Both the position numbers and the translations under genes were made by a program. From Monocercomonoides exilis PA203 (lineage: Eukaryota > Protista > Preaxostyla), in the NCBI GenBank assembly GCA_001643675.2, contig LSRY02000089.1, positions 1-33,875 of the forward strand: a stretch of 33,875 bases of DNA, written 5' to 3'. Below, piece by piece: positions 9,056 through 24,354 of the stretch; position 1 is the first letter of the stretch; each line of letters starts with the position of its first letter. The notes under the pieces were generated by a model, which was given only the letters and a program-made list of their open reading frames with translations, was not told the DNA's origin and did no database searches.

Positions 9056-12000
9056 CTAATATGAAGACAGTTCAGAGAAACGCCTGCTGGCGCCACTCGA
9101 CAAAGCACAGCACTTTCTCTGCTTGCGCGAAAAACACGACTTCTGAAATTCTCCCTTCTCTCCTCTTCCCTCTTTCAAATCACCCTTTTCTTTCTTCCCC
9201 AAAGTCCTCTTCTCCTCCTCCTCCTCCTCCTTCTTCTTCTTCTCTTCCTCCTCCTCCTCCATCATCAATGCCCTGTCTGCTCCTGCTGCTTCCGCTCCCA
9301 ACCCATGGAGAGCTCAAATCCACCCCGCCTTCCCCTCTGCTCTGCTTTTCTTCTGTCGCTCCCTCTTCCCTCATCTCTTCCATTTCCTTCTCCTTCTCCT
9401 TCCTCTCGCCTCCCGGGTGTTCTGCCCCAAGCAGCGCCGGTGCTGCTGCCAGCGACGAACCCCGCCATCCGCCGCCTTCGCATACCGCCTCTCCATCTGC
9501 ACCCCCGCCGCCTCCACCACACCCCAAACACCACTGCCACCCCCACCACACACGCCCCGCACACAATCGGCACCAGCACAAACGCCACATCACCTGCTCC
9601 CCGCTGCCTGCTGCGCCCTGTGCTTCATTGCTGCTTGTGCCATTTGTGCTGTTCGTGCTGTTCGTGCTGTTGCCCACACACTTGTTCCGCGCCAGCTGCT
9701 GTTCTGCTGCCGCCTCTTCCTCGCTCTCCGGCACAAAGCACAGCGGACTCTTCACACTCGGAATCCGGCTGCACAACCCTCGCGAGTTCTCGTAATACCC
9801 CGACTCGCACCCCGCCGACACGCACCCTGTCTCGCAGAACTCCCCCGTCGCCTCGTCCACCCCGCGCCCCAGCACCCGGTGCGCCTCCCTTCTGCTCTCG
9901 TATCTCTCGCACACCGAAGTCGATTGTGCCGTCAACGATGAAAATGAAGTGGATGAAGTGGATGAATTGAGTTGCGTGAAGTGTGCTTGATGTGCTGCCT
10001 CTCCTCCTCCTCCTCCTCTGCCGCTGCCTCTGCCTCTGCCAAGCCGCCCGGCTGCGCATTCTGCTGTCTCTCGCACCTCCCACCTCGCCAGCCGCTCCAT
10101 CCCCTGCCCCACCCCCACCGCCACCCGCAGCCGCTCCTCCACCTCCATCGCCAAAGGCGTCACTGAACACAGCACCACCACATCCGCCCCACACACCTTC
10201 AGCTCCAGCGACTCTGCCTCTTCCCCAACCCCAAAGCTCAGCGTGTCCTCCATCCCCACGACACCGTCTGCCCCTCCCGCAGCAGCCTCGCCGGCAGCAT
10301 CCCCTCCGCGTTCTCCCCATACTTCGCTGCTGCAAGCGCCCGCACCTCCTCCTCGTCCACCGCTCCCCCTCCGCTGAACGACCCCACATCCACATCCCCC
10401 TCTGCATCTGTCGGGTCTGCCCCTATCACCGCCACCTTCGCCAGGTGCCGCTCCGCAATGTGCTTCACAAACTGCCCACATACCCCTCCGCAAAGCCCGT
10501 CGCTCACCACCATCACATGCTCCGCATCAAACAGCCTCTCCCCGCCCCACTCCACCGACGCCGCCCACTTCCCAAACAGGTCGCTCTCCTCCCTGTTCAG
10601 CGCATACACCCGCGTCCACACACGCTCCCGCCGCACCGCCCCGTCTCCACTCCTCCTCCCGCACCTCCTCCTCGCTCAGCCACTTCTCTTTCTTCTTCTG
10701 CGTCTCATACTCCACCGCCTCCACCCCGCCGTCTCCTGCCAGCCCCTCTGCCACAAGCATGTTCCCCATGCTCTTCACAAACCTCTCCCGCCCATACAGC
10801 GGATACTCCCCCGGAAACAGCACATGCAGCAGCCCCCGCCCCAGCCCTGCTGACCCCCCCGTGTTCCCGCGCACATCCACCACAACACGCACCTTCCCTG
10901 CCTCTCCTTCCCTTTTCTCCCCCTTCTCCCCCTTCTCCCCTTCCTCCCGCAGCCACCGCAGAGTCTCAAACACACTCGCCACAAACTGCTTCTCGTCTTC
11001 AGGGCTGAACGAGTCCACATTCAACACCCCAATCCGCTCCGATTCAACATAATATGCGCTGAACGCCTCGCTCTCATACAGCACTGTCACATCCTCCTCT
11101 TCCGCCTCACTGCCTCCACCTGCTGCATTTTCCCCTCTTTTCCACACCAATCCAATGCCATCTCTCTGCTCCCCAACGCTCCTCCTCTTGCCTCCTGCTC
11201 CTGCCTCTCGCCCTTCACCTGAAATGTTCAGTAGCGCATGCTCGTTGCCTCCTCGCCTGATCCTCAGCCGGGGCAGTCGCTGCTTCGTCACCCTGTATTT
11301 CCCGTTGCTCCCTGTTCCCCAGCCTCCGCTCCTCCGCTCCTTGATGACAAGCGCTGATCCTCCGCCTTCCCCAAACTGCGTGGTGTTCAGATGGTTCTGC
11401 GCTCTTCCCCCTGTGTTGCCGCAGTCCCGCAGTGCTGCTGTGCCCAAACGCCTGCGCCCCACGCTTCCCTGCTCCAAAAGCACTTTCTCGGAAAACCGCA
11501 CGTTCGCTGCTGCGTTAGTCGCTCCCCGGCCTCTGTGGCCCTGCTGAGCCTGACTCCTCGTGAAGTTCAGCCTGCCAAACGCATGCCCCATCAGCGTCTG
11601 CCGCGTGATCTCCCGCAGCTTCCTCTGCTGCCTCCGCTCGCTTTCCCCAACAACTGCCCTTGCAGCCCCCGCTCTCCCCCTGCCCCTGTGCTGCGCACCC
11701 CAATTCGACAAGGCTGCTGCCTGCTTGCTGCCTCCGCCCTGCGTGTCTGTCCCGTTCGCACTCTCCTTCAGCGGGCACAGCCGCGTGATGTCGTAGATGT
11801 CCGCCCCCGACATCCCGTACATCATCCAGCTCGTCTCCCGCACCGCCCCCTCCCCGTCCACATACCGCACCCGGATCGTGTCCGACTCCGGCCTCCTGAA
11901 CAGCCCCGCCAGCCGATACGAGAAATACATCTGCAGCGCTGCATTCACCCGCGCTGCCCGGCTCCGCGACATCATCACGTTCTCGTCTGCCCACCGCGCG

Positions 12001-12675
12001 ATCGTCTCCCACGGCTCCTCCGCCCTGTACCCTGCCCCGTCGTACGAGATGTTCACAACCGCGCAGTCCCGGATGTCCTCCACCAGCCCCCGATACAGGC
12101 ACGCCTCAAACAGCGACTCCATCGCCCCCGGCACCGCATACACCGCCCGCGGCTGCCCCGTCTCCTCCTCATACGCAATCTCAAACGAGTACGGGCTGAA
12201 GTACCCGTAGTAGTTGTAGCACGGCATCGTGTACATCGTGTGCGGATCCTTCAGCCGCGACAGCGCTGCCCCAACATCCATGTGCTTCTTGTACCCGCTC
12301 CGGTACTGCACCTCCCCGATCCGCTCCAGCTCCCCCACCACGTCGAACGACAGCCCGCTGTACGGCGCCGGCAGCGCCAGCACCCGGTCCCGCAGCGCAT
12401 ATCCCTCCAGATACTTCTTCACCGTCTCCACCAGCTCCCCGAGCTCCTCCACCTGCACACAGCACAGCGCGCCGCAAACATCCATTTTGGTGCATCAGAC
12501 AGCAGACACACTTCCCGCTGAACAGCCACAAACCAAAAACTCAAAAAAATAGAACACAAACCGGATAGTTGTCCAGGCACTCCGCCAGGTACGACGCCGC
12601 CACAAACTCTGTCGCATTGATGTCGCAGTAGCGGCACTGCACTGCGGCTGCCAGCCACACCAACGCCAAATACAT
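9056..12675 (-). CDS. Type I membrane peptidase S41 family protein (CPAF/fungal S41-like), possibly catalytically inactive
   Basis: Signal peptide MYLALVWLAAAVQC. Intron 12453-12561 joins CLDNYP|VEELGEL. Motifs LSRLKDPHT, IGVLNVDSF, VVVDVRGNTGG and VVSDGLCGGVCGQF, then a Cys-rich stalk, NST sequons, a TM helix (VAFVLVPIVCGACVVGVAVVFGVWW-RRR) and a charged tail. Several apparent homopolymer frameshifts (~10635, ~10255, ~9590). Confidence 0.8.
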
Positions 12676-12899
12676 CCTGCTGCAGAAAATTCTCTTTGCT
12701 GAATCGCTTGATATATTTTTATGGGCAAGTGACGCAAAAAATGAAGAAAATATTTGAATAATAATTTTGTTGAAGTGCAAATCTCCCTTGCCACACTTTT
12801 CAATTTTCCTTCCATTTTTCTGCACCATGTAATTGTGCAGGCCTTGTTTTTGTTTTCGATTGTGAATAACTTCACAATAAAGAAAAATAAAATAAAGCA

Positions 12900-13700
12900 T
12901 GTTTGGAGAAATAGGAGGTCCGCATGCAGCAGAGATGAGCCATTGGTGCACTGCTTTGTGCGACCAAGCACTGCAGCTGCATCGACAGAAGCTTGCTCTT
13001 CGCCCCCAAGTTCGCCTTTTCTCATCATCCTCTGATAATCAAAAGAAAAACCACACACACCCCCCACGACAATCCATCAGCATCCGTCCTTCCGGGCATC
13101 TCCATTTTTTTGGTGTCTTTGGCCGCGATTCTCTCATGGCTGCAAGTTGCACAACAAGACTGTTTCTCATTAGCCCTTTCTTCTGCATACCTTTCCCGAT
13201 TTCCCCAATCGCAAAATCAACTGCTATCATCGCGCTTCCCGTGCACAAAACCTCTCGCAAAAGCCAGAACACTCCTGCTGCAAACATGCTCCTTCCCTCC
13301 CTTTGCTTGTGGTGCGGCTGCTCAATGCTCCCAAACCGCCTCTCGCACATCATCCACAAGATGACAAAGCCTTCAAAACACCTCCAAACAGTCACCAGCC
13401 ATCCCCATGCAATATTCATATGTCTCTCTCTCTCCCTTGTGCATTTCACATTCTTCTTCTTCTTCTTCCATCCCTCCCTTCTCGATGCTTCTTCCAGTTC
13501 CTGTGCTGCCTTCCCAGCAGATTCCCAGTTTCACCAAAAACCTCTCCTCCGCATCCCTTCTCTTCGTGCAGCCTCATCATCACAAACGCATTCTCCCTGA
13601 CCGATGGACAAATCCCATCACGCTCAGATGCCCCTGCTGGCACTTCAGCATTTCGGCCTCATCCTCCATCTGTCTTCCTTTTGTCTTCACACTGCTCATG
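12900..13700 (-). CDS. Possible hypothetical protein (fragmented)
   Basis: GC-rich segment with the purine-rich minus strand typical of coding strands here, bounded by AT-rich spacers. No recognisable domain and no continuous frame. Confidence 0.25.
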
Positions 13701-14349
13701 GAAACGAACACAAAAAAAGCAAGAATGAATAAAAATCAGAAACAAATCATTTGAAAATGATGCTGAGTGAAGCGCAGACTCGTGCTGGCAAAACACGCTT
13801 TCAGCCCTCCTTTGCACCCCCCGCACACCAGCTCAACTGCATCCTCATTTATCTGTGCTTTGCCTGCCCAACGCAATCACACAGCAACAATGCCATTTCC
13901 CACCATATCCCTGTCTCACCAGCAACAACTCGTTTTTTTTTTCTTTTTCTTTCATTTTTTTTACCTTCATTGCAAAGTCATGCCCGCTCCACAAAATATC
14001 TTTGTTTTTCTCTCTCTTACTCAAAAAGACAGCCAAGGAGAAAGTGAAATTCCTTTTTCTTTCACAATCAATTTTTTTCCCTCACTTTTCATCATTCAAC
14101 AGAGCGCAATCCTGAAACATCAAGCAAGCACAAACACTTGTCTTTTTTCTGATTCATAAGAATACAGAAAAAGACAAACACAAAAGACTCTAAATATTCG
14201 AAAGGGAATTAAAAGTGAACAATTTCAGTTTTTTTATTTTGCAATCATTTTTCGTGAGAAAATCCTCCAGCGCAATGTTCTTTGTGTCGTCTCTTTCGTT
14301 CCATCTTTCGCTCAAAAATAAAAAAAAAAATGTCTGATCTTGTTTATTG

Positions 14350-17300
14350 ATGAGTAATATTTATTTGGCTGCTGGAAATGAGATCAACAAGAAGGAACAA
14401 CAAGACAGCGCCTCCGATATTCAAGGTGTTTGCTGCTGGCTCAGACGTGATTCTCATTTTCTTCTTTGTTTTTTATTTTTTGTGCAACTTGGGGGCTGGC
14501 TGATGGTGCAAAACTGGATGATTTTGTGTTTTGTTGATGCTCTTGCTGTGGGTGGGGCTGCTGTGCAACGGAAATGCTGCATGGGGAACGCGATGCAGGA
14601 TGCAAAAGTGGAAGAAGTGAGAGACGAGAGTTTGCTTGTTTTGCAGGAAAGAATCGGATTTTGAGCTTTGAGCCTTTTTCATTTCAATGTTTATTTTTTT
14701 GGTGCAGCGATTAACGCGCTGGAGAGGCTGACAGAAAAGCTTCAGTATTTGTGTTTTTGTGTTTGTTCATGGCGAGTTTTCAGAGGGCGGAAGTTTGGGG
14801 CAGGCGAGCTGGCTGGCATTTCGAAGGAGATGTGTGATTTGCTGTGGCGATGTGTCGGAAGGATGGAGAGTGTTCCGGCGTATATTCTGCGCAACGTGCT
14901 GCACTGCGGGAAGGTGGTGCTGAGCGCGGGAGCGGACGACAGGGTGGCAGCCAGCTATGTGCGTGCAATGGCGCTTGTTGTGGATGTGAGGTCGTATCCA
15001 GTGCAGCACCGGAGGCTGAGGTTGGAGGAGGTCCAGCTGACGGCGCAAGAAAAAAGGCACGTGAAATCACCGCGCGGGAAGGAGAAGCAGCAGACGAAGA
15101 CGGTTTTGACGTCGGATGTTGTAGGGTCGCCGCTGCTGCAAGAGGTGATTTTTGATGGGGAAGTGGTTCCGGCAGTTGTGGAGCGGATCCACGCAGCAGA
15201 AAGCGAGGAGGCGCTGAGTGCGCTGGCCAAGGTGGTGTTGGGGTTTGTGAGGATCGCAGACCAGGCGGGGCTTGCGGCGATGGTGGGGCAGCACATTCTG
15301 GACGGGATCGACACGATTCTGATGCGGTGCCAGGAGAGGGCAGGGCTGATTGATGCGGTCGAAGCGCTGCAGCTGGTGTTCGCTGCCAGGACAAACATCA
15401 CCCTGATGGCGTCCAATGGGTGGGGGAAGGCATTTGAAGAGCACTGCTTCGAGGGGGTGCTGACGGAGATTGCGGTGGGGAACAAGAGCCGAGGGGTTGC
15501 GCGGGAAAAGATAAATCTGAGAGCTCCGTATTACGAAAGGGTGGTGGATGTGGAGCTCGAAGAGGGGCGTGAGAGGTTCGAGGAGGAGGATGTGGGAAAG
15601 CTGGATGATGGGGAGTCCGTGACAGAGCAGGCAGCAGACAGCGGCAGGGGCACAGAGGAAAGCAAAGGAGAGAAAGGGAGAGCAAAAGAGGGAGCGAACA
15701 GGAGGCAAAGGGAACAGAAGAGGAAAGGGGGGAAAAGTGCAGCAAAGGAGAAGGAACGTCTCAAGGCGAAGTGGAAGCAGAAGGGAGGGAAAAGGAAGCA
15801 AGAGGAGGGGAGAGTGGCAGAAGTGCAGCGAAAAGAACAGCGTCTCCCATTTTGTGTGCGTTTGGAGGCGGCGTGTGCAGTTTTGTGGGAGAAGGATCAT
15901 TACAGATTCAATTTGCCTGTGAAGAAGCTGGCAGGCGTGCTGGTTGAGGGCATTGCGCTTCCCGAAGGAGCAGAAGCAGAATACGTGAAGCGAAAGCAAA
16001 AGCTTATGGAGAGTGAAAAGAGCAGATTGAAGAGGGAGGGCAGCGAGATGGATGTCAACATCAGGGAAAGAGACGGTGGTGATGGCGAAGCAGAGGGAGT
16101 GTTGGAGAGCAAGCTGAACATTCCCCACATCTACAATTGCATTTATTGCCTGAATGTTTTGTTTTCTGACTGGGGTTTGACTTGCTTGTGTTGTGTTGTG
16201 TTGTGTTATGATTTTGTTGAGGCATGTTTATTCAGACACGAAGTATTATTGCGGGACAGTGCGCAAGGCTGAGGCGATGCCTGATGAACAGCTGGAAGCA
16301 ATTGTGAACAAGCTGTTGCGGCTGAACAGGCATGCCCCACTGTCAAATTGCAATTTCGATTTTTTCTTTTTCTTTTTTCTTTCTGTAACTGCCCTCGAGC
16401 AGGTTTCCGGACAAACTGTTCTTCAGAATGTCGAGTCACTGCCTTGAAAGCATCTGCATGTTGTATCGGCAGCAGATGAAGCGGCTGTATGGCGGAGTGT
16501 TTGAGCAGCGGCTGATGGAGGAATTGGATGAGGTGGAGATGGAGATGGAGAAAGCGGCAGAGGCTGGGGGTGGAGGGGCAGACAGCGAGGAGTACATAAA
16601 CATCTATTCCCAGGAGTACATGCGGTCCATCTGGGAAGAAGCGCCGTTCAGCTCCATCCGGGAGCCAGTGGTTGGGGAGTACGAGTCGGTTGCTGATTAC
16701 ACGCTGGACAAGATGCAACTGCTGAGAATGTCTTTTCTGGAGAGACGGACGCTGCAGTCAGACATGTCGTCGGTGTTCTGTTGCAGCAGATTGGGCTGGT
16801 TGCACGGCCGGTGGGTCAACAGAAACCTGGTGTCGGTGCGGAGGCAGCACAGCTCGTGGGCAGCGCTGCGCTTCAACCACACGCTGAGCTGTATTGCTGC
16901 AACGTGTGCTGCGCAAGATGCGAGCAGCGACGATGTGGTGACGCGGCCGTTCTTCAGGAGGCTTGTTGGGCGGCTGGTGCGCCCTTTTGCGCTTCAGGTG
17001 CCTTTTGGGGTGGGGTCGCTGTCGAGTGTCGCATACCAGCAGCACTCGCTGGAGTCTGTGCAGAGCACGATCGACCTGTTTGCGCTGGAGGTGCTGACGA
17101 ATGTGGAGAAAGAGCTGGGGTTTGTGTTTGAGGAGGGGTATGTTGGTGCTCTGTTTGGGCGGCTGGCTGGGAGCATGGAGCTGAACAGCCACGCGCTGTA
17201 TGTGGCTGTGCAGGTCATCCGGGAGACGTGCATTGCGTTCATGAGGGCAGACCGAGAAGCGAGGGTGAAGGCAGCTGGGGTGTTGAACGCGAGCATTGCT

Positions 17301-17921
17301 GAGTGGAACAGGCATGGAGAAGGGAAGGAGGCAGCAGGGAGGCGGGTCTTCCTTCAAATTGCTCCGTTTGAGCTTGTTTCTGTGATTGGCGCAAATATGT
17401 GCTGGGGAGTGTATGGGCAATGCTTTGCAGCCGACTCCACAAAACATGGCAGCAGGTGGAAGCAGGTGGGTTGCTTGGAGAAGTTGGAGAAGGGAAAGAA
17501 GTTGGAGAAGTTGGAGAAGGGGGAGAAGGGGGAGAAGGGGGAGAAGGGGGAGAAGGGGGAGAAGGGGGAGAAGGGGGAGAAGGGGGAGAAGGGGGAGAAG
17601 GGGAAGAAGGGGGAGGATGTTGGGGTTGTGCTGCTGCGTTTGGTGGATGATACGATTGAAGAGCGTGGGATTCGCGACTGTGTGGAGGCCACGCCGCAGC
17701 ACAATGATGTGCAGCTGTTCTGGCGGTGCTCGGGGAGCCTGCCCTCGAAAAACCGGGTGCAGCAGGCGTCGCTCTATTCTCGCGGGAAAGTGTCCGATGT
17801 GGAGGGACTGCCATATGCAGAGTTCGTGCCGATTCCCTCGGATCCTTTGTCTGCTCCTGATCCCGAGGCTTTTCGCCAGGCGAATTACCGCATGGTTTTC
17901 CTTTTCAATGTCGCGAATTAG
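14350..17921 (+). CDS. Multi-exon hypothetical protein with an ARM/importin-alpha-like helical segment and a (GEK)n repeat
   Basis: Long ORFs 14668-16272 and 16428-17921 with coding-like G/A bias, separated by T-rich intron-like stretches. The segment LQEVIFDGEVVPAVVERI...HILDGIDTIL...AFEEHCFEGVL resembles ARM repeats. Exon limits are approximate. Confidence 0.6.
17475..17618 (+). repeat. 9-bp tandem repeat (ttggagaag/ggggagaag) encoding LEK units and (GEK)9
   Basis: Nine perfect ggggagaag units at 17520-17600, flanked by variant units. Confidence 0.95.
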
Positions 17922-18549
17922 ATGCTGGATAAAGAGTGATTGATGGGGAATTTCAGCAAACAAGGCATCATGAAATGGCATGGACATTCGAGTGTTTTGG
18001 ACGTTTATTTTTCTTTTTCATAAGTCTTTATTTGCAAGCGTTTTGATTGCAATATTTTTTACAATTGGTTCCACTACTGGAGTTGCATTTCAGTTGTTTC
18101 TGGAAAAGTATTTTTGTATCTTTATTTCTTTCTTTCTCGTTTGTTTGTTTGCATGTTTATTTGTTTTTGTGTTATTTTCTTGTTTTTTCGCACTTTGTAA
18201 GTGTGAATGTTTGTTCTTTTTATTTTTACAAAAACATCTGTAATTTTCCGAAGGCATTCAAGCAGAAGTGTGCCTGGTCTATGTTTGTGTTTGTGTTTGC
18301 TTTTTTTCTTTTTCCTTTTCCTTTTGTTTGGGCTTTTTTTTGTTTGTTTGTAAAACTTCACTCAAGGCTCAACTGTATTTATCTCTGGCAACAACAAGCA
18401 ATTGCCCTTTCAGTGGGAGTTCACTTTCGGACACATTCATTCGTTTCTATTCCTTTAAAGCCTGGGGGGAAAAAGACAGAAAAAAAAGAAATGGAAATGG
18501 AAATGGGAAAAAAAATATGCAAAAAATCCTGTGCTCTTCTTTCTTCTTC

Positions 18550-21500
18550 TCACACACGCTGCCGCACGCGCTCAAACACTCCGCCTCCGAGCGCAACAAC
18601 TTCAAGCGCTGCCACCCCAACGCAGAACACCATCCCGATCCACAGCGCTGCGTCTTCCCCCACATACCCTCCCAGCACATCCATCACCACTGCAAATCCT
18701 CCCACCCAGCACAGAAACGCTGCTGTCACCCCTATCAGCAGTGTCTGCACCCACACCAGAAATGGTTTCGAAGCATGTCAATGCCAACACATCAAAGCAG
18801 AACAACAAAAATTTCAATAAAAAAAGAAATTTGAAAAAAATATAAAATAAAATAAAATAAAATAAAATGATATGAACGTTCATTAGCATTCCGAAGAATG
18901 CAAAAATCAATACTTTCTTCCTTTTTCTTCTTTCTCGCAAAAGAAAACAAAAAATGAAAGTTATCAAACATGAAGCACACCTTCCAAGGCAGCACAAGAC
19001 AAAGCAGCAGCCCACTCGCAAATTCACCAAACAGGAGCACAATGCTGCTCAGCGCAACATTGTCGCTTCCCATCCCCACAAACAGACACACACACACCTC
19101 CAGCACACGCATGCACACGCTCACTCCAACACACTCGCTCCCCATCCCCACCCACTCCATCCACTTCAGCAGACCCTCCTTCCTTCTCCTTCTCTTCATC
19201 TTCATCTTCATCTTCATTTTCTTCTTCATCTTCATCATTTCTTTGTTGCTTTCTCTCTCTTTCTCTCCCTTCCCCTTCTCTCTTGTGCAACTGCAGCATT
19301 CCTCGTCTTGTGTGCTGCCGCTCCTCTGTTCCCATCCACCCTCAACTCCCAGCGGCAGCCCCAGATCCAGCCCCAACGCCCCCAGCTCATCTGCCTCTCC
19401 ACCCAGCACATGCCTCATCACACCCCCAAATCCGCCCCCTTCTCCTTCCTTCCTCCCCTTCCTCTGCTTCCCCTGCCACTCCCACCACGCACAGCACACC
19501 CCGCGCACCCCCTCCCACACAACTGCTGCTGCCACACACAGCCCGCACACACTCGCCCCCACACGCTCTGCAACTCCCCACCTCTCCCACCTCCCCCTCC
19601 CCACATACTCCCCAACAGCCCCAACACACCCAAACACACACACAAACCACACCCCTTCCCACACAACCATCGTCATCCATATCCCAACACGCATCCCGCA
19701 CCTCCCTGACATCTCATGCCCTTCTTCCTTGTTCCTTTTCCTTTCTTCTTCTCCCTGTCTCCCTCTCCGGCAGCCTCTTCGCTTCTTCTTTTCTTCAACT
19801 CTCTCCTCTTCATCCTCTTTTTCTCCCTCTCCCCTGCCTCTCCCCCCACCCACAACTCCCACCACACAGCCACAGCCCCACCGCACACCACAACAACACA
19901 CACACCGTCGCCCCAACACAAGCCCCATACACCCCCACGCTCCACACATCAACCTCCCCATCCGAAATCGACCCCACAAATGATGCCATCTCCTTGTTCT
20001 CCGCCACACACCATTCTCCACACACCCCCCACCTCTTCTCCCCAACAACCATTTCCGCTCCCACGCCTTTCCCCTTCAGCGTCACCCAATCCACAATCCT
20101 CTCCCACGTCCTCCTTTTCCTCTCTCCCTCCCATCCACCCCTTCCATCCCATCCACCCCATCTCCCTCCTCTCTCCTCCACAACCCTTCCCCCCTCCTTC
20201 CCCAACCACATCTCCAATCCTCCTCCTCCTCCTTCTCCTCCTCTTCCTCTTCCCACAAACCCTTTCCACACCCCAGACACCACTGGCACATCCATCCCAA
20301 ACAGCGCTCCGCCACACCGCCGCATGAACATCCCAATCACAACCGGCATCTCGCTGTATTTGCACAGCGACAGCACACACACCACACGCGCCATGTGCAC
20401 ACACAGCCCACCCAGCGCCACACACCTCCTCATCCCAACATCCACCCCTTTCAGCCTTGTCAATATTTCCTCCTTTCTTCCTCTTCTTTTAACTCTTTGT
20501 TCCGCCTTCTCTTCTTTTTTGAGTTCCTCACTCATCATCTGCTTCGTCTCCCCCTCCTCTGCCACTGCCAATGCCACTCCTTGTTCTTCCAAGCTCACAT
20601 AGCTCTTCCTCAGCGGAGCGTGCACAGAAGATGAGTGAAATGAAAGAGATGATCGTGATGATGATAATGCCGATGAAGACGAAGAAGAAGAAGAAGATGA
20701 TGATGATGAAGATGCAAAAGTTGGAGAGATAGCAAATGATGTGGCTGCAAGATGTGATGGAGTTGAATCTGGCGAAAGAGACGAAGCTGTTTTTGCTCCA
20801 TCTGTGGTTGCTGCAACTGCTGTGCTCATTGGAGTAGATGCCGGCGGGAAAGGCGATGCTGGCAACGAGGATGATGCGCATGAAGTGCTTTGATTGAATG
20901 GAGTGAAAGAAGCAAAAGAAGCGAATGAAGAGTGTGAAATGCGTGTTGTGTGTGTTGAACATTTTGTGGATTGTGACTGAAATGATTGAGGTGTTTTGAG
21001 TGAAGTGAACCCTGTTGACAGCTTCGGCGAGTGTGCATCTCGTCCAATCCCTTTTCCTCTTCCCAATGCAATCTCTGTTCCCCTCTTTCTCCACCTCTCA
21101 TCTTTCTCCCCTTTCGTTTCTGTTCTTTCCTCTTCCTCTTCATCATCCTCATCTGTTTCCTCCTCATTCATTTCATGTTCCCCTCTTTCTGGCTTCTCCT
21201 CTTCCCTTCTGCTTTCATTCTCCCACAAATTTGGCGTTGACACTTCTCTCACATTCGGAACCCTTCTCTCTCCTTCTTCTTTCTTCATTGTTTCTTCTTC
21301 TTCCTCCTCCTCCTCTTCTTCTTCTTCTTCTTCCCTCTTTCCATTTGCACCCATCTGTATCGTCTTCATTTCTCTTTCATTCCTCCTCTTTCTCCTTCTC
21401 TTTTCTTCGCTTTCTTCGCTTTTCTCTCTTTCATCATCCTTCTTTTCACAATCTTCTAATTTCCTCTCTTCCTTTTCTTCTTCTTCAACTTCTTCTTCTT

Positions 21501-22290
21501 CCTTCGCAGCCTCTTCCTGAAGCTCCTCCATCAGCCACTCTCTTTTGCTTTCTCCTTCACACACAACCACTCCAACTCCAAGCACGCTTGCAAGCACACA
21601 CACCCCAAACACACACCCCACCCACTCCATCGCCTTCTCGCTTCTCCTCAACCACCCATCCTCATTCTCTTCTTCTCTCATAACTCCATCTTCTCCATCT
21701 TCTCCATTTTTTCCTCTCCCCGTCTTCTTTCTCTCCCCTTCTTTTCCTCTTTCTCCTCCCATTTGCCCTCGCTTCCTCCTCTCCGCTTCCACAGCATCTC
21801 CACAATATGCCCCTTCAAATCCTCTTTTGCACACACACACTTTCTTGTCTCTTTCTTCCTCTTTTTCTCTCCCCTCGTCTCCATCCCAATCTCTTCTGCT
21901 TGTGAAGTGCCTCTTCTTCACGGACACACACCTTCCTCCATTCCCACAATCCGAGTTCCGGCTGCACCGCCCGTCTTCCCATTCGCATTCTCGTCCGCCT
22001 CTCTGTCCACCGCATTGGCACTCCGCTGGCGATAGCTCTGTTGCCCTTCCGCATCCAAACACCCCTGACGAGCAGTTCGACAGCCGAATTCTGCTTCTCT
22101 CTTCTCTTTCTCTTTCTCCTCCTCCTCCTTCTTCTTCTTCTCTTTCTTCTTCTTTGATCAAGCAGAAGTCTCGTGTTGCCTCTATTCCAATCCCATTGGC
22201 CCAGATCACTCCATCCACAGACACACTCAGCCACACTTTTCTCTCTCTGCAGCCCACACAGCATATCACAGCAAGACACAAGGCAAACAT
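18550..22290 (-). CDS. EGF-like repeats plus a multi-pass membrane domain resembling the fungal Flc/Pkd2 TRP-like C-terminal domain (probably the 3' part of the cathepsin gene)
   Basis: EGF motifs CQCGGQRGGREC and CSRNSDCGNGGRC...CVCKRGFEGAYC, a TM helix, a long acidic/Ser insert, then several TM segments including RVLEVCVCLFVGMGSDNVALSSIVLLFGEFASGLLLCLVLPWK. Intron 18745-18980 joins PWK|TLLIG. Frameshift near 19877. Confidence 0.7.
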
Positions 22291-22407
22291 TCAATAATTC
22301 GCAGCATGTCACAGAATAACATCAAATACAAAAATATGATAAAACAAAAACAAAAATAAAAAATAAAAATAAAAATAAAAAAGAAAAGAAACAACTCATT
22401 GGCAAAA

Positions 22408-23965
22408 TCATCTTCTCTCTTTCTGCACACCTTTTCCTGCTCCACACAGCACCCAGCTGTCTTTCAGTGATGAGAACACACAGACAATCTCTGATGGCGA
22501 CACCCATTCCACCCCCGAAGACATCACATTGTCCAGCCGGCACTGCAGATGAGGCGTCTTAAACATGTTTGCTCCCTTCACTGCAAACCGCGCCTTCACA
22601 TCTCCACACTCTCTTTCTCCTCTGCCCCGACGCTGCTCCACCACATCCACCGAGATCCTGTCTGGAAACACCGATCCAATCTGCACCCTCCCAAACACAG
22701 GCACCATCACCCCATCTCCTCGAGCTCCGCCTGCCTTGCTCCTTGTCTTTCCCCCTTCGACAGCCCATTGCGGCATCTGCACAGAATCCTCCACACTCAC
22801 GCGCGGGTATCCAAACTGCACCTTCTTCACTGCCCCTTCTCGGATCTTGAAAAACCCTTCGTCTCCCCACTGCTTCCCCCACGAATTCACGCACAGCCAG
22901 TACCCAATCTCCTCCGTCTCGTCCTCTGCCCCGTTTCCATCTCCGTCTTCATCATTGCTCATCTCATCCACCACACCCACCTCGATCCTGCTGCTTTTGC
23001 TCCTGTTGCTCTGCCTCCATTCGGCATCTCTTTTCCTCGCCTCTGCCTCTGCCTTCTTCACTGCCAGCGCTGCCTTCCTCCCCACCCGCTCCTTCCCATA
23101 CCCCACTATCCGCACTGAATGCGGAGTCTGCCACTCTCCCGTCTGCTCCACGTAAATCCCCTCTTTGTACTTCGTGAAGTCTTCCCGCACCACAATCGTC
23201 CCTGTCACCGGCCCAAACACAACAAGCTCCTCTTTCACCCGCTCCCTCCCGCTCTTCCCCTCCGCGTCTGCCCAGTGAACGCTCTCCGAAAACACCACCC
23301 CGCTCCCCAGCGCATTCACACATCCCCTCTGGCACTGCCCCTGCCGCCCGCGATACGGCTGGCACACACCCAGCGGCACTCCATCCTCCATCGTCTCCAC
23401 CCACGCCTCTGCTGCCCGCCCGCCCTCGCAGCTGCTCCCGTCTCGGTTGCAGTCCACCAGGCTCTGCGTCGACAGCTCCCCGCGGAACAGCCCGCCTGTT
23501 GCTCGGCACAGTCGCTCCCCAAGCGCCTTCGTCACAGACTCTGCCCAGCAACTGCAAATCATCAAATGGACAAATAAAAAAAAATGCAAAACAATTCGAA
23601 AAACAAATTCTATAAAAACAACAGCGCATATGGTCTCCTTTCTTGTTCCAGGGATCCTCGCTTCGCACCCACCTCCACGCACATTCACACACCTTCCGCA
23701 AGACAGCTGGTTCGATGCTCGCAGAATGCACTCTGGGTGCCTCTCCCGCGGGTCGTAGCTTTCAGGCAGCCTTTCGACAACATACTTGTTTGCCGGCCTC
23801 TCCGCACTCAGCACAGCCTCGCTGTTGTCCTCCGCCCACATTTTCATAAACGGCTTTTCTGGCATCCCCTGCTCCGCAGCACCCGCTCCTTCCACAGCCC
23901 GTGGTCAACAACCCCGTTTCTGCCCCAAGCACCACGGCAATCACTGCCATGATAAGTCCCTTCAT
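22408..23965 (-). CDS. Cathepsin B-like papain-family (C1A) cysteine protease with a C-terminal IPT/TIG-like domain
   Basis: Signal peptide MKGLIMAVIAVVLG (frameshift ~23897), LPESYDPR, NQLSCG|SCWA after removing intron 23552-23692 (Cys 23548-23550), LSTQSLVDC, CEGG, HSVRIVGYG (His 23119-23121), YWLCVNSWG..WGDEGFFKI (Asn 22885-22887). IPT-like IGSVFPDRI...VKGANM...LQCRL...WVSPSEIVC follows. Confidence 0.92.
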
Positions 23966-24354
23966 TTTCTTTTCTGCAATCTCGCTTTTTCAATTCTGAG
24001 TTGCACACGCAGTTGCCTCAGCACAAAAAAGAAAGAAAAATCGGTTTTTCACAATCCCAAAACAATCCTTTTCTCCCATCACTCGCCCCCTCTCCGCCCT
24101 GCGAAGCCTCTCCCCTCGCCTTCTACAGCTCGTTTCATTTCTTTTCTTCTCTCCTCTTATTTTCCTATGGGTAGAAGATCCATTTATTTTTTCCATTTTT
24201 TCATTTTTCGTGTTCACTCTCTTCTCGCTCGGTTAATGCTTAAAATTCTTCAACTCAAACAAAAAATAATAATAATAATAATAACAAAGAATAATTATAA
24301 AAGGTCACAAAACGTGAACAAAAAGCAAATTGATGATTGAGAAACATTTCTATT

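Follow-up and report, generated by a model that had tools for sequence, protein, structure and literature searches.

In Monocercomonoides exilis, the model eukaryote without mitochondria, the 33,875-bp contig LSRY02000089.1 (the window, which is the entire contig, here called C90) carries on its minus strand a frame (22408-23895) that matches the public protein P0001 (KAH7814885/MONOS_13756) at 100%. This protein of 472 amino acids is labeled "putative cathepsin B2 cysteine protease" and ends in ...GAGKGVQKERR at the stop at 22408. Our analysis makes it likely that the cathepsin B2 gene and the long frame downstream of it are one four-exon gene on the minus strand and that MONOS_13756 is truncated. 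We demonstrate the splicing, the reading frames, and the catalytic residues. The likely product of ~1,621 residues would contain, in this order, a signal peptide, a short pro-region, a cathepsin B-like domain, a TIG-like domain, an acidic linker, and a cysteine-rich region with an EGF-like unit, followed by one transmembrane (TM) helix, a low-complexity stretch of ~375 residues rich in acidic residues and serine, and a tail rich in glycine, valine, cysteine, and tryptophan with ~nine hydrophobic segments. The annotated stop of MONOS_13756 is intronic, and ~70% of the protein has been overlooked, which calls for a correction of the public gene model.

The evidence for a single gene comes from RNA, available as short contigs from four runs (X1 to X4) of one study, which we aligned to positions 18400-24100. 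The runs are probably the culture metatranscriptome of PMC12308965 (PRJEB70623), and contigs of this type drop rare variants. We found three GT..AG introns on the minus strand, all with the appearance AAG/GTGTG ... TGCAG/:

23552-23692, minus strand: intron 1, 141 nt, GT..AG; joint 23551-23693 in all four runs
22247-22430, minus strand: intron 2, 184 nt; includes both the annotated stop (22408-22410) and the downstream frame's ATG (22288-22290)
18745-18980, minus strand: intron 3, 236 nt, GT..AG, phase 0; joint 18744-18981 in runs X2 and X4

Thus, spliced RNA joins the protease frame to the downstream frame, and both the annotated stop and the internal ATG are devoid of RNA contigs, as the single gene proposed from the letters of the DNA (hereafter the sequence-only reading) would have it. 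The donor of intron 2, AAAG/GTGTGC (exon end 22431, intron start 22430, minus strand), had been placed correctly in that reading and is used in all four runs. The T-rich, intron-like body that it described is also there: the intron is AT-rich (GC 0.30), and its 3' end reads GGGCTGCAG, with the AG at 22248-22247. The likeness that it noted to other introns of the locus holds as well, with 23692-23552 and 18980-18745 being alike in look and also spliced in RNA. The region that it singled out for an RNA check, 22200-22480, yielded no transcript contig holding the stop at 22408 or an independent start at 22290. In none of the four runs did an RNA contig lie over 22251-22430, and the depth inside intron 2 was zero; the depth in the bins 22220-22410 and 22411-22601 is wholly explained by contigs that end at 22250 (or 22246) or start at 22431. 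In the contigs bridging the junction, one flank is 94 nt long and the opposite flank 215-294 nt. As for intron 1, it can be read through in frame, and the raw open reading frame therefore hides it; its removal restores the CGSCWA motif, as in P0001.

The reading frame at the junction has to be considered together with the state of the assembly, which contains four near-identical copies of the gene (98.6-99.5% identity). Apart from the window, the same gene is found on three other contigs:

C74:88609-94695
C17:8223-14288, at the start of the contig
C84:39974-44627, at the end of the contig

The differences between the copies are nearly all insertions or deletions in homopolymers or short repeats. 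Because positions 1-7925 of C17 are collinear with 9947-18000 of the window, at least part of the copy number is contig redundancy, and the four copies have the appearance of contig ends that are redundant and insufficiently polished, not of four true paralogs.

At the 3' end of intron 2, the sequence-only reading had chosen the AG at 22246/22245 as acceptor and had spliced 22430 to 22245 in frame. This did not hold: that AG is not among the RNA joints, the first AG being used instead, and the in-frame form needs six extra bases that match C17. In run X1, 22431 is joined to 22246 (the first AG), and the window then reads ...GAGK-EREKCG followed by a stop, six codons past the junction. In runs X2-X4, six additional bases (AGAGCA, gene strand) are found between 22431 and 22250. 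A 10-nt segment, GCAGAGAGCA, located at window position 22251, is present in copy C17 alone, and the C17 segment together with splicing at the first CAG gives exactly the sequence of X2-X4, in frame. The in-frame junction reads ...GAGK-E-SSRERKVWLSVSV..., in summary form GAGK-E-SSRERKVWLSV. Two origins of the X1 form are conceivable: the gene copy used may lack the 10 nt, or a C17-type copy may be spliced at a second acceptor located 10 nt further downstream. In both cases, the mRNA would be out of frame, with a stop six codons past the junction, and may produce a minor soluble form.

With these introns removed, the exons and the features they encode are as follows:

23693-23965, minus strand: exon 1, which carries the start codon (ATG at 23965) and encodes a short, hydrophobic signal peptide, a pro-region that is also short, the oxyanion Gln (23707-23709), and the initial residues of CGSCWA
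22431-23551, minus strand: exon 2, with the cathepsin B-like catalytic domain and the first TIG-like strands (~22431-22701)
23548-23550, 23119-23121, and 22885-22887, minus strand: catalytic Cys, His, and Asn of exon 2, respectively, by alignment to 1pbh
18981-22246, minus strand: exon 3, ~1,090 codons, many parts of which carry RNA contigs
~22153-22246, minus strand: last TIG-like strands, followed by the acidic linker
~21802-21969, minus strand: EGF-like unit within the cysteine-rich region
~21559-21630, minus strand: TM helix 1
~20431-21558, minus strand: acidic and serine-rich low-complexity stretch, followed in exon 3 by the first six or seven tail segments
18550-18744, minus strand: coding part of exon 4, 64 codons, in phase 0 from exon 3, with two more hydrophobic segments and the stop at 18550-18552

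After correction, the coding lengths are 275 nt for exon 1, 1121 nt for exon 2, 3275 nt for exon 3, and 192 nt for the coding part of exon 4, giving a total of 4863 nt or 1,621 codons.

Two further corrections enter these lengths. In the window, the ATG at 23965, with which the signal peptide begins, and the protease are out of frame by 2 nt. The RNA contigs, which for exon 1 span 23693 to 24099, carry one additional base after 23865 and one after 23911 (plus strand), at two G-runs, and copy C74 agrees. These two insertions bring the ATG into frame, as in P0001. The signal peptide-bearing protease of the sequence-only reading is thus found in the RNA- and C74-corrected sequence, where the ATG is in frame, but not in the window as assembled. 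Since the RNA matches C74 at the 5' end but C17 at the acceptor, no single copy is fully correct. The other correction concerns the G-run at 19846-19847, where the window exceeds C17 and C84 by one G and C74 by two (C74 gains a nearby A). Due to this extra G, the downstream frame stops at 19810 in the window; with one G fewer, it continues to the phase-0 donor at 18981 and then through exon 4 to the stop at 18550-18552. As no RNA contig covers 19546-20118, the support for this correction comes from the other copies and from frame logic. A short intron behind the frame break at 19810-19850 was considered and rejected, as the sole GT..AG candidate measures ~16 nt and the copies vary in the length of the G-run. 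For the quality of the assembly, this means that the same locus stands on four contigs with differing indel errors and that the RNA fits a mosaic of them.

The coding status of the exons was evaluated by counting stops. All the inferred frames contain zero stops, while the other frames contain 2-24 and shuffled sequences average 11-50 (exon 4 excepted). For exon 3, the count is zero in the inferred frame compared to 18-24 in the other two frames and a shuffle mean of ~50. In the 64 codons of exon 4, zero stops is not significant (shuffle mean 2.4; P of zero stops 0.085). The 3' untranslated region (UTR) extends to at least 18400, and the RNA contigs over 18400-18746 are identical to the window. 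The exons are rich in repeats and have a GC content of 0.52-0.61 with a strong skew of G over C, compared to 0.37-0.48 in the other cathepsin genes of this genome.

This base composition is seen more widely in the window. Coding stretches between 4000 and 29000 have a GC content of 0.5-0.65 with few C on the coding strand, as compared to 0.32-0.39 at the other M. exilis loci examined, and the proteins they encode show an abundance of G, V, W, C, E, and R. The convergent neighbor at 16428-17921 (plus strand) is a frame of 497 codons with a long (EKG)n-type repeat. Some RNA contigs depart from the gene. In all four runs, contigs follow it to 22629 and then enter an unrelated locus at C18:974936-974965. 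We rejected an alternative 5' exon for these and treated them as chimeras because the C18 locus and window 22611-22629 share an identical 19 nt. Past 18551, contigs that match the 3' UTR up to that point run into G-rich sequences of two kinds, both unrelated; chimeras at the GAA-rich repeat could account for them, as could other transcripts with a common UTR.

The identity of the protease was assessed by domain searches made exon by exon. Peptidase_C1 (PF00112) was matched with 121.2 bits, against a gathering cut-off of 20.7, and the top 23 PDB sequences were all cathepsin B or cathepsin B-like (E 3.6e-24 to 8.9e-21), with cathepsins H, X, L, and S below them. The motifs NQLSCGSCWA, PHSVRIVGYG, and YWLCVNSWG align to the matching motifs of procathepsin B (1pbh), so that the Gln, Cys, His, and Asn that the sequence-only reading regarded as retained all fall on the catalytic residues. 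Between aligned blocks, the occluding-loop region comprises ~28 residues versus ~51 in 1pbh (~23 fewer), which suggests from the alignment that the occluding loop is shortened or absent. A low-complexity insert of ~60 residues lies between the His and the Asn. Single-sequence AlphaFold2 modeling of P0001 gave a predicted local distance difference test (pLDDT) value of 33.5. In an exhaustive HMMER search of 1.84 billion representative proteins with exon 2, the matches beyond M. exilis entries were to cathepsin cores only, and past query residue ~265 nothing aligned but P0001 and P0004, another public model, both of which terminate in ...GVQKERR. The long matches pair the protease with bacterial Ig-like domains, WSC, patatin, Hint, VSP-like repeats, or tandem protease domains. 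The domain combination proposed here was not among the best 150 relatives from this collection, and a shallow literature search found no description of a cathepsin B of such layout. The architecture is unusual and lineage-specific.

Downstream of the protease, an IPT/TIG-like fold had been proposed to be split by the junction of exons 2 and 3. The last 79 residues of exon 2 matched Pfam TIG (PF01833) with 14.6 bits (E 0.033), which is below the cut-off of 20.9; it aligned to positions 19-64 of the 84-position profile, with the match ending close to the end of exon 2. Searched alone, the first 30 residues past the junction did not match TIG, and a six-frame search of the genome with PF01833 gave no match either. 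We then co-folded, as two separate chains, 90 residues encoded by exon 2 and the first 34 encoded by C17 exon 3. The interaction prediction score from aligned errors (ipSAE), which expresses the model's own confidence, was 0.75, 0.75, and 0.76 in three runs, compared to 0.02 for the best of three controls. Among solved complexes, 51 of 78 attain this mark, against 2 of 108 among mismatched pairs. Contact agreement was at least 95%, and the pLDDT of the partner was ~80. The tightest contacts were those of the LQCRL strand with the VWLSVSV strand, and the first strand also touched the IGIEA strand. This is the pattern that an Ig-like sandwich should show when the last two strands, encoded by exon 3, complete it. 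Thus, the split Ig-like domain is demonstrated at the level of the model only: the partial Pfam match and the co-fold speak for the TIG domain predicted by the sequence-only reading, while a match above the gathering score is missing.

The same reading had named an EGF domain, and here too one part stood. A six-cysteine pattern of EGF type, CSRNSDCGNGGRC ... VCVCKRGFEGAYC, ends in C-x-C-x(2)-G-[FY]-x-G-x(2)-C and is followed by the TM helix, with a charged insert of ~30 residues in the loop between the third and fourth cysteines. On the other side, the Pfam matches (PF00008 / PF07974) were split and sub-threshold, with EGF_2 at 14.1 bits (cut-off 22.1) and EGF at 10.1 bits (cut-off 21.5), and a look-up of the EGF region in the ESM Atlas returned no usable match and named no family.

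For the remainder of the product, a hydropathy scan delineated one clear TM helix, the ~375 acidic and serine-rich residues, and then the ~nine hydrophobic segments with their high content of G, V, C, and W, several of these segments having an internal Glu or Asp. No Pfam family was matched at E<=10 on any piece of the tail, and the ESM Atlas recognition value of 749 is low for a real family and came without a family name. Beyond the four copies, the genome contains no paralog of the downstream part. Word-based protein searches with the downstream frame (the whole frame, and residues 1-235) returned no protein and no self-match, the whole-frame search being swamped by low-complexity words. The tail may have been born from GT-rich repeats.

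The sequence-only reading assigned this tail to the TRP-like (Flc/Pkd2, PF06011) channels and derived from it a protease-gated or self-processing channel or receptor. We consider this very improbable. The ~nine hydrophobic segments behind a large extracellular part, several with an acidic residue, are reminiscent of fungal Flc/Pkd2 proteins, which have a broadly similar layout, but these traits are not family-specific. Neither PF06011 nor another membrane family was matched at E<=10 on any piece, the low Atlas value came with no family, and TM helix 1 and the ~375-residue low-complexity stretch intervene between the ectodomain and the tail. A six-frame genome search for PF06011 was also negative, which weighs little since the control genomes gave no match either. 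The idea of a channel or receptor for the fused protein is speculation. Even less probable, and in our view close to excluded, is that the locus holds two independent genes, a cathepsin B2 ending at 22408 and a separate gene starting from the ATG at 22290. The ends of P0001 and P0004 would agree with such an arrangement, as would the downstream frame having an ATG of its own; however, the segment with the stop and the ATG (22251-22430) is free of RNA contigs in every run, RNA contigs bridge both frames, and no public protein for the downstream frame appears to exist in the length range searched.

More weight has to be given to the possibility that only a soluble protease of ~471 residues is functional, with splicing at the first AG shifting the frame and the downstream 3.5 kb being an untranslated, decaying remnant, which we nevertheless regard as quite unlikely. 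Much of what favors it also weighs against the single four-exon gene. The X1 joint (22431-22246) reads EREKCG and then a stop, so that one of the four runs carries an out-of-frame junction, and only one of the four assembly copies, C17, has the 10 nt needed for the in-frame junction, which are missing from the window, C74, and C84. The downstream part is of low complexity and without homologs: outside the protease core, none was found in the genome or in collections of 5.8 and 1.84 billion sequences, and for the coding status of the tail no argument can thus be made from conservation. The tail is repeat-rich, compositionally extreme, and of low protein language model recognition value. Further points against the four-exon gene are that TIG and EGF both remain under their Pfam cut-offs, that none of the short RNA contigs, all from one study, spans the entire gene, and that RNA coverage is absent over 19546-20118, where a frame correction is required. 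Against a purely soluble enzyme stand the in-frame junction in three of the four runs, the ~1,150 downstream codons without a stop where 16-50 would be expected, and the structure of its product, which would be short of the last two strands of the Ig-like domain, exactly those that exon 3 provides. Moreover, the assembly copies are error-prone, and the RNA sides with different copies at different sites. We therefore continue to favor the single four-exon gene.

How such a product might work can be outlined as follows. The protease and the stalk would face the cell exterior or the lumen of a digestive vacuole, the low-complexity stretch would be cytosolic, and the tail would serve as an extra membrane anchor. 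M. exilis feeds on bacteria (PMC12308965). The layout of a type I ectoprotease, the bacterial diet, and the presence of other TM-bearing cathepsins in the genome lead us to the view that this bacterivore would use the product as a membrane-tethered endopeptidase, acting at the cell surface or in digestive vacuoles. A more elaborate scheme, which we hold to be unlikely, is that the tail is a polytopic, lineage-specific module with a function of its own (such as transport or signaling), joined to an active cathepsin B ectodomain on a TIG/EGF stalk, and that the two acceptors 10 nt apart switch between soluble and giant membrane forms.

Compared to cathepsin B (C1A), the product shares the protease sequence, the catalytic Gln, Cys, His, and Asn, the signal peptide, and the short pro-region. 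It differs by an occluding-loop region shorter by ~23 residues, the ~60-residue insert between His and Asn, ~1,150 further residues (TIG-like, EGF-like, and membrane segments), and unusually GC- and G-rich exons. In meprin and ADAM ectoproteases, a protease is followed by β-sandwich or cysteine-rich modules, an EGF-like unit, a TM helix, and a cytosolic tail. What is shared with them is layout, not ancestry, and a protease held by a stalk at the membrane is the likely common mode of working. Meprins and ADAMs are metalloproteases without a polytopic tail and are not homologous to the protease described here. TINAG and TINAGL1 also combine EGF-like or cysteine-rich modules with a cathepsin B-like domain; in these proteins, the modules are N-terminal to the protease, the catalytic Cys has been lost, and the products are secreted matrix proteins without a membrane anchor. 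With DEK1-type calpains, our product shares a cysteine protease and a many-helix membrane domain in one chain. There, however, the protease is a cytosolic C2 enzyme placed C-terminal to the membrane domain in a conserved family, whereas here a C1 protease is N-terminal and would be lumenal or extracellular, and the membrane part has no relatives.

The gene can also be compared to other cathepsins of the same organism, for which 44 cathepsin B paralogs have been reported (PMC6759080). We identified the following examples:

C13:336662-338611 (L016:3163-5112), plus strand: single-exon cathepsin B-like frame with several PSI (plexin) repeats and a C-terminal TM helix
C45:280737-282875 (L014), minus strand: cathepsin B, Pro-rich linker, cysteine-rich domain
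C5:876215-877831 (L015), plus strand: cathepsin B, Pro-rich linker, cysteine-rich domain
C6:660663-662093 (L017), plus strand: cathepsin C type (exclusion domain and Peptidase_C1) with a C-terminal TM helix

The cysteine-rich domain of the C45 and C5 proteins is Frizzled-CRD-like by eye, Pfam having detected the protease only. All four share with our gene a papain-family ectodomain followed by cysteine-rich modules and/or a C-terminal TM helix, and tethered cathepsins are thus evidently a recurring feature of this organism. They differ from it in their accessory domains, in having at most one TM helix and no polytopic tail, and in their ordinary base composition, and their downstream parts show no sequence similarity to this gene. 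Together with these other tethered cathepsins, the gene described here suggests that part of the cathepsin B expansion works at membranes and not as soluble lysosomal enzymes.

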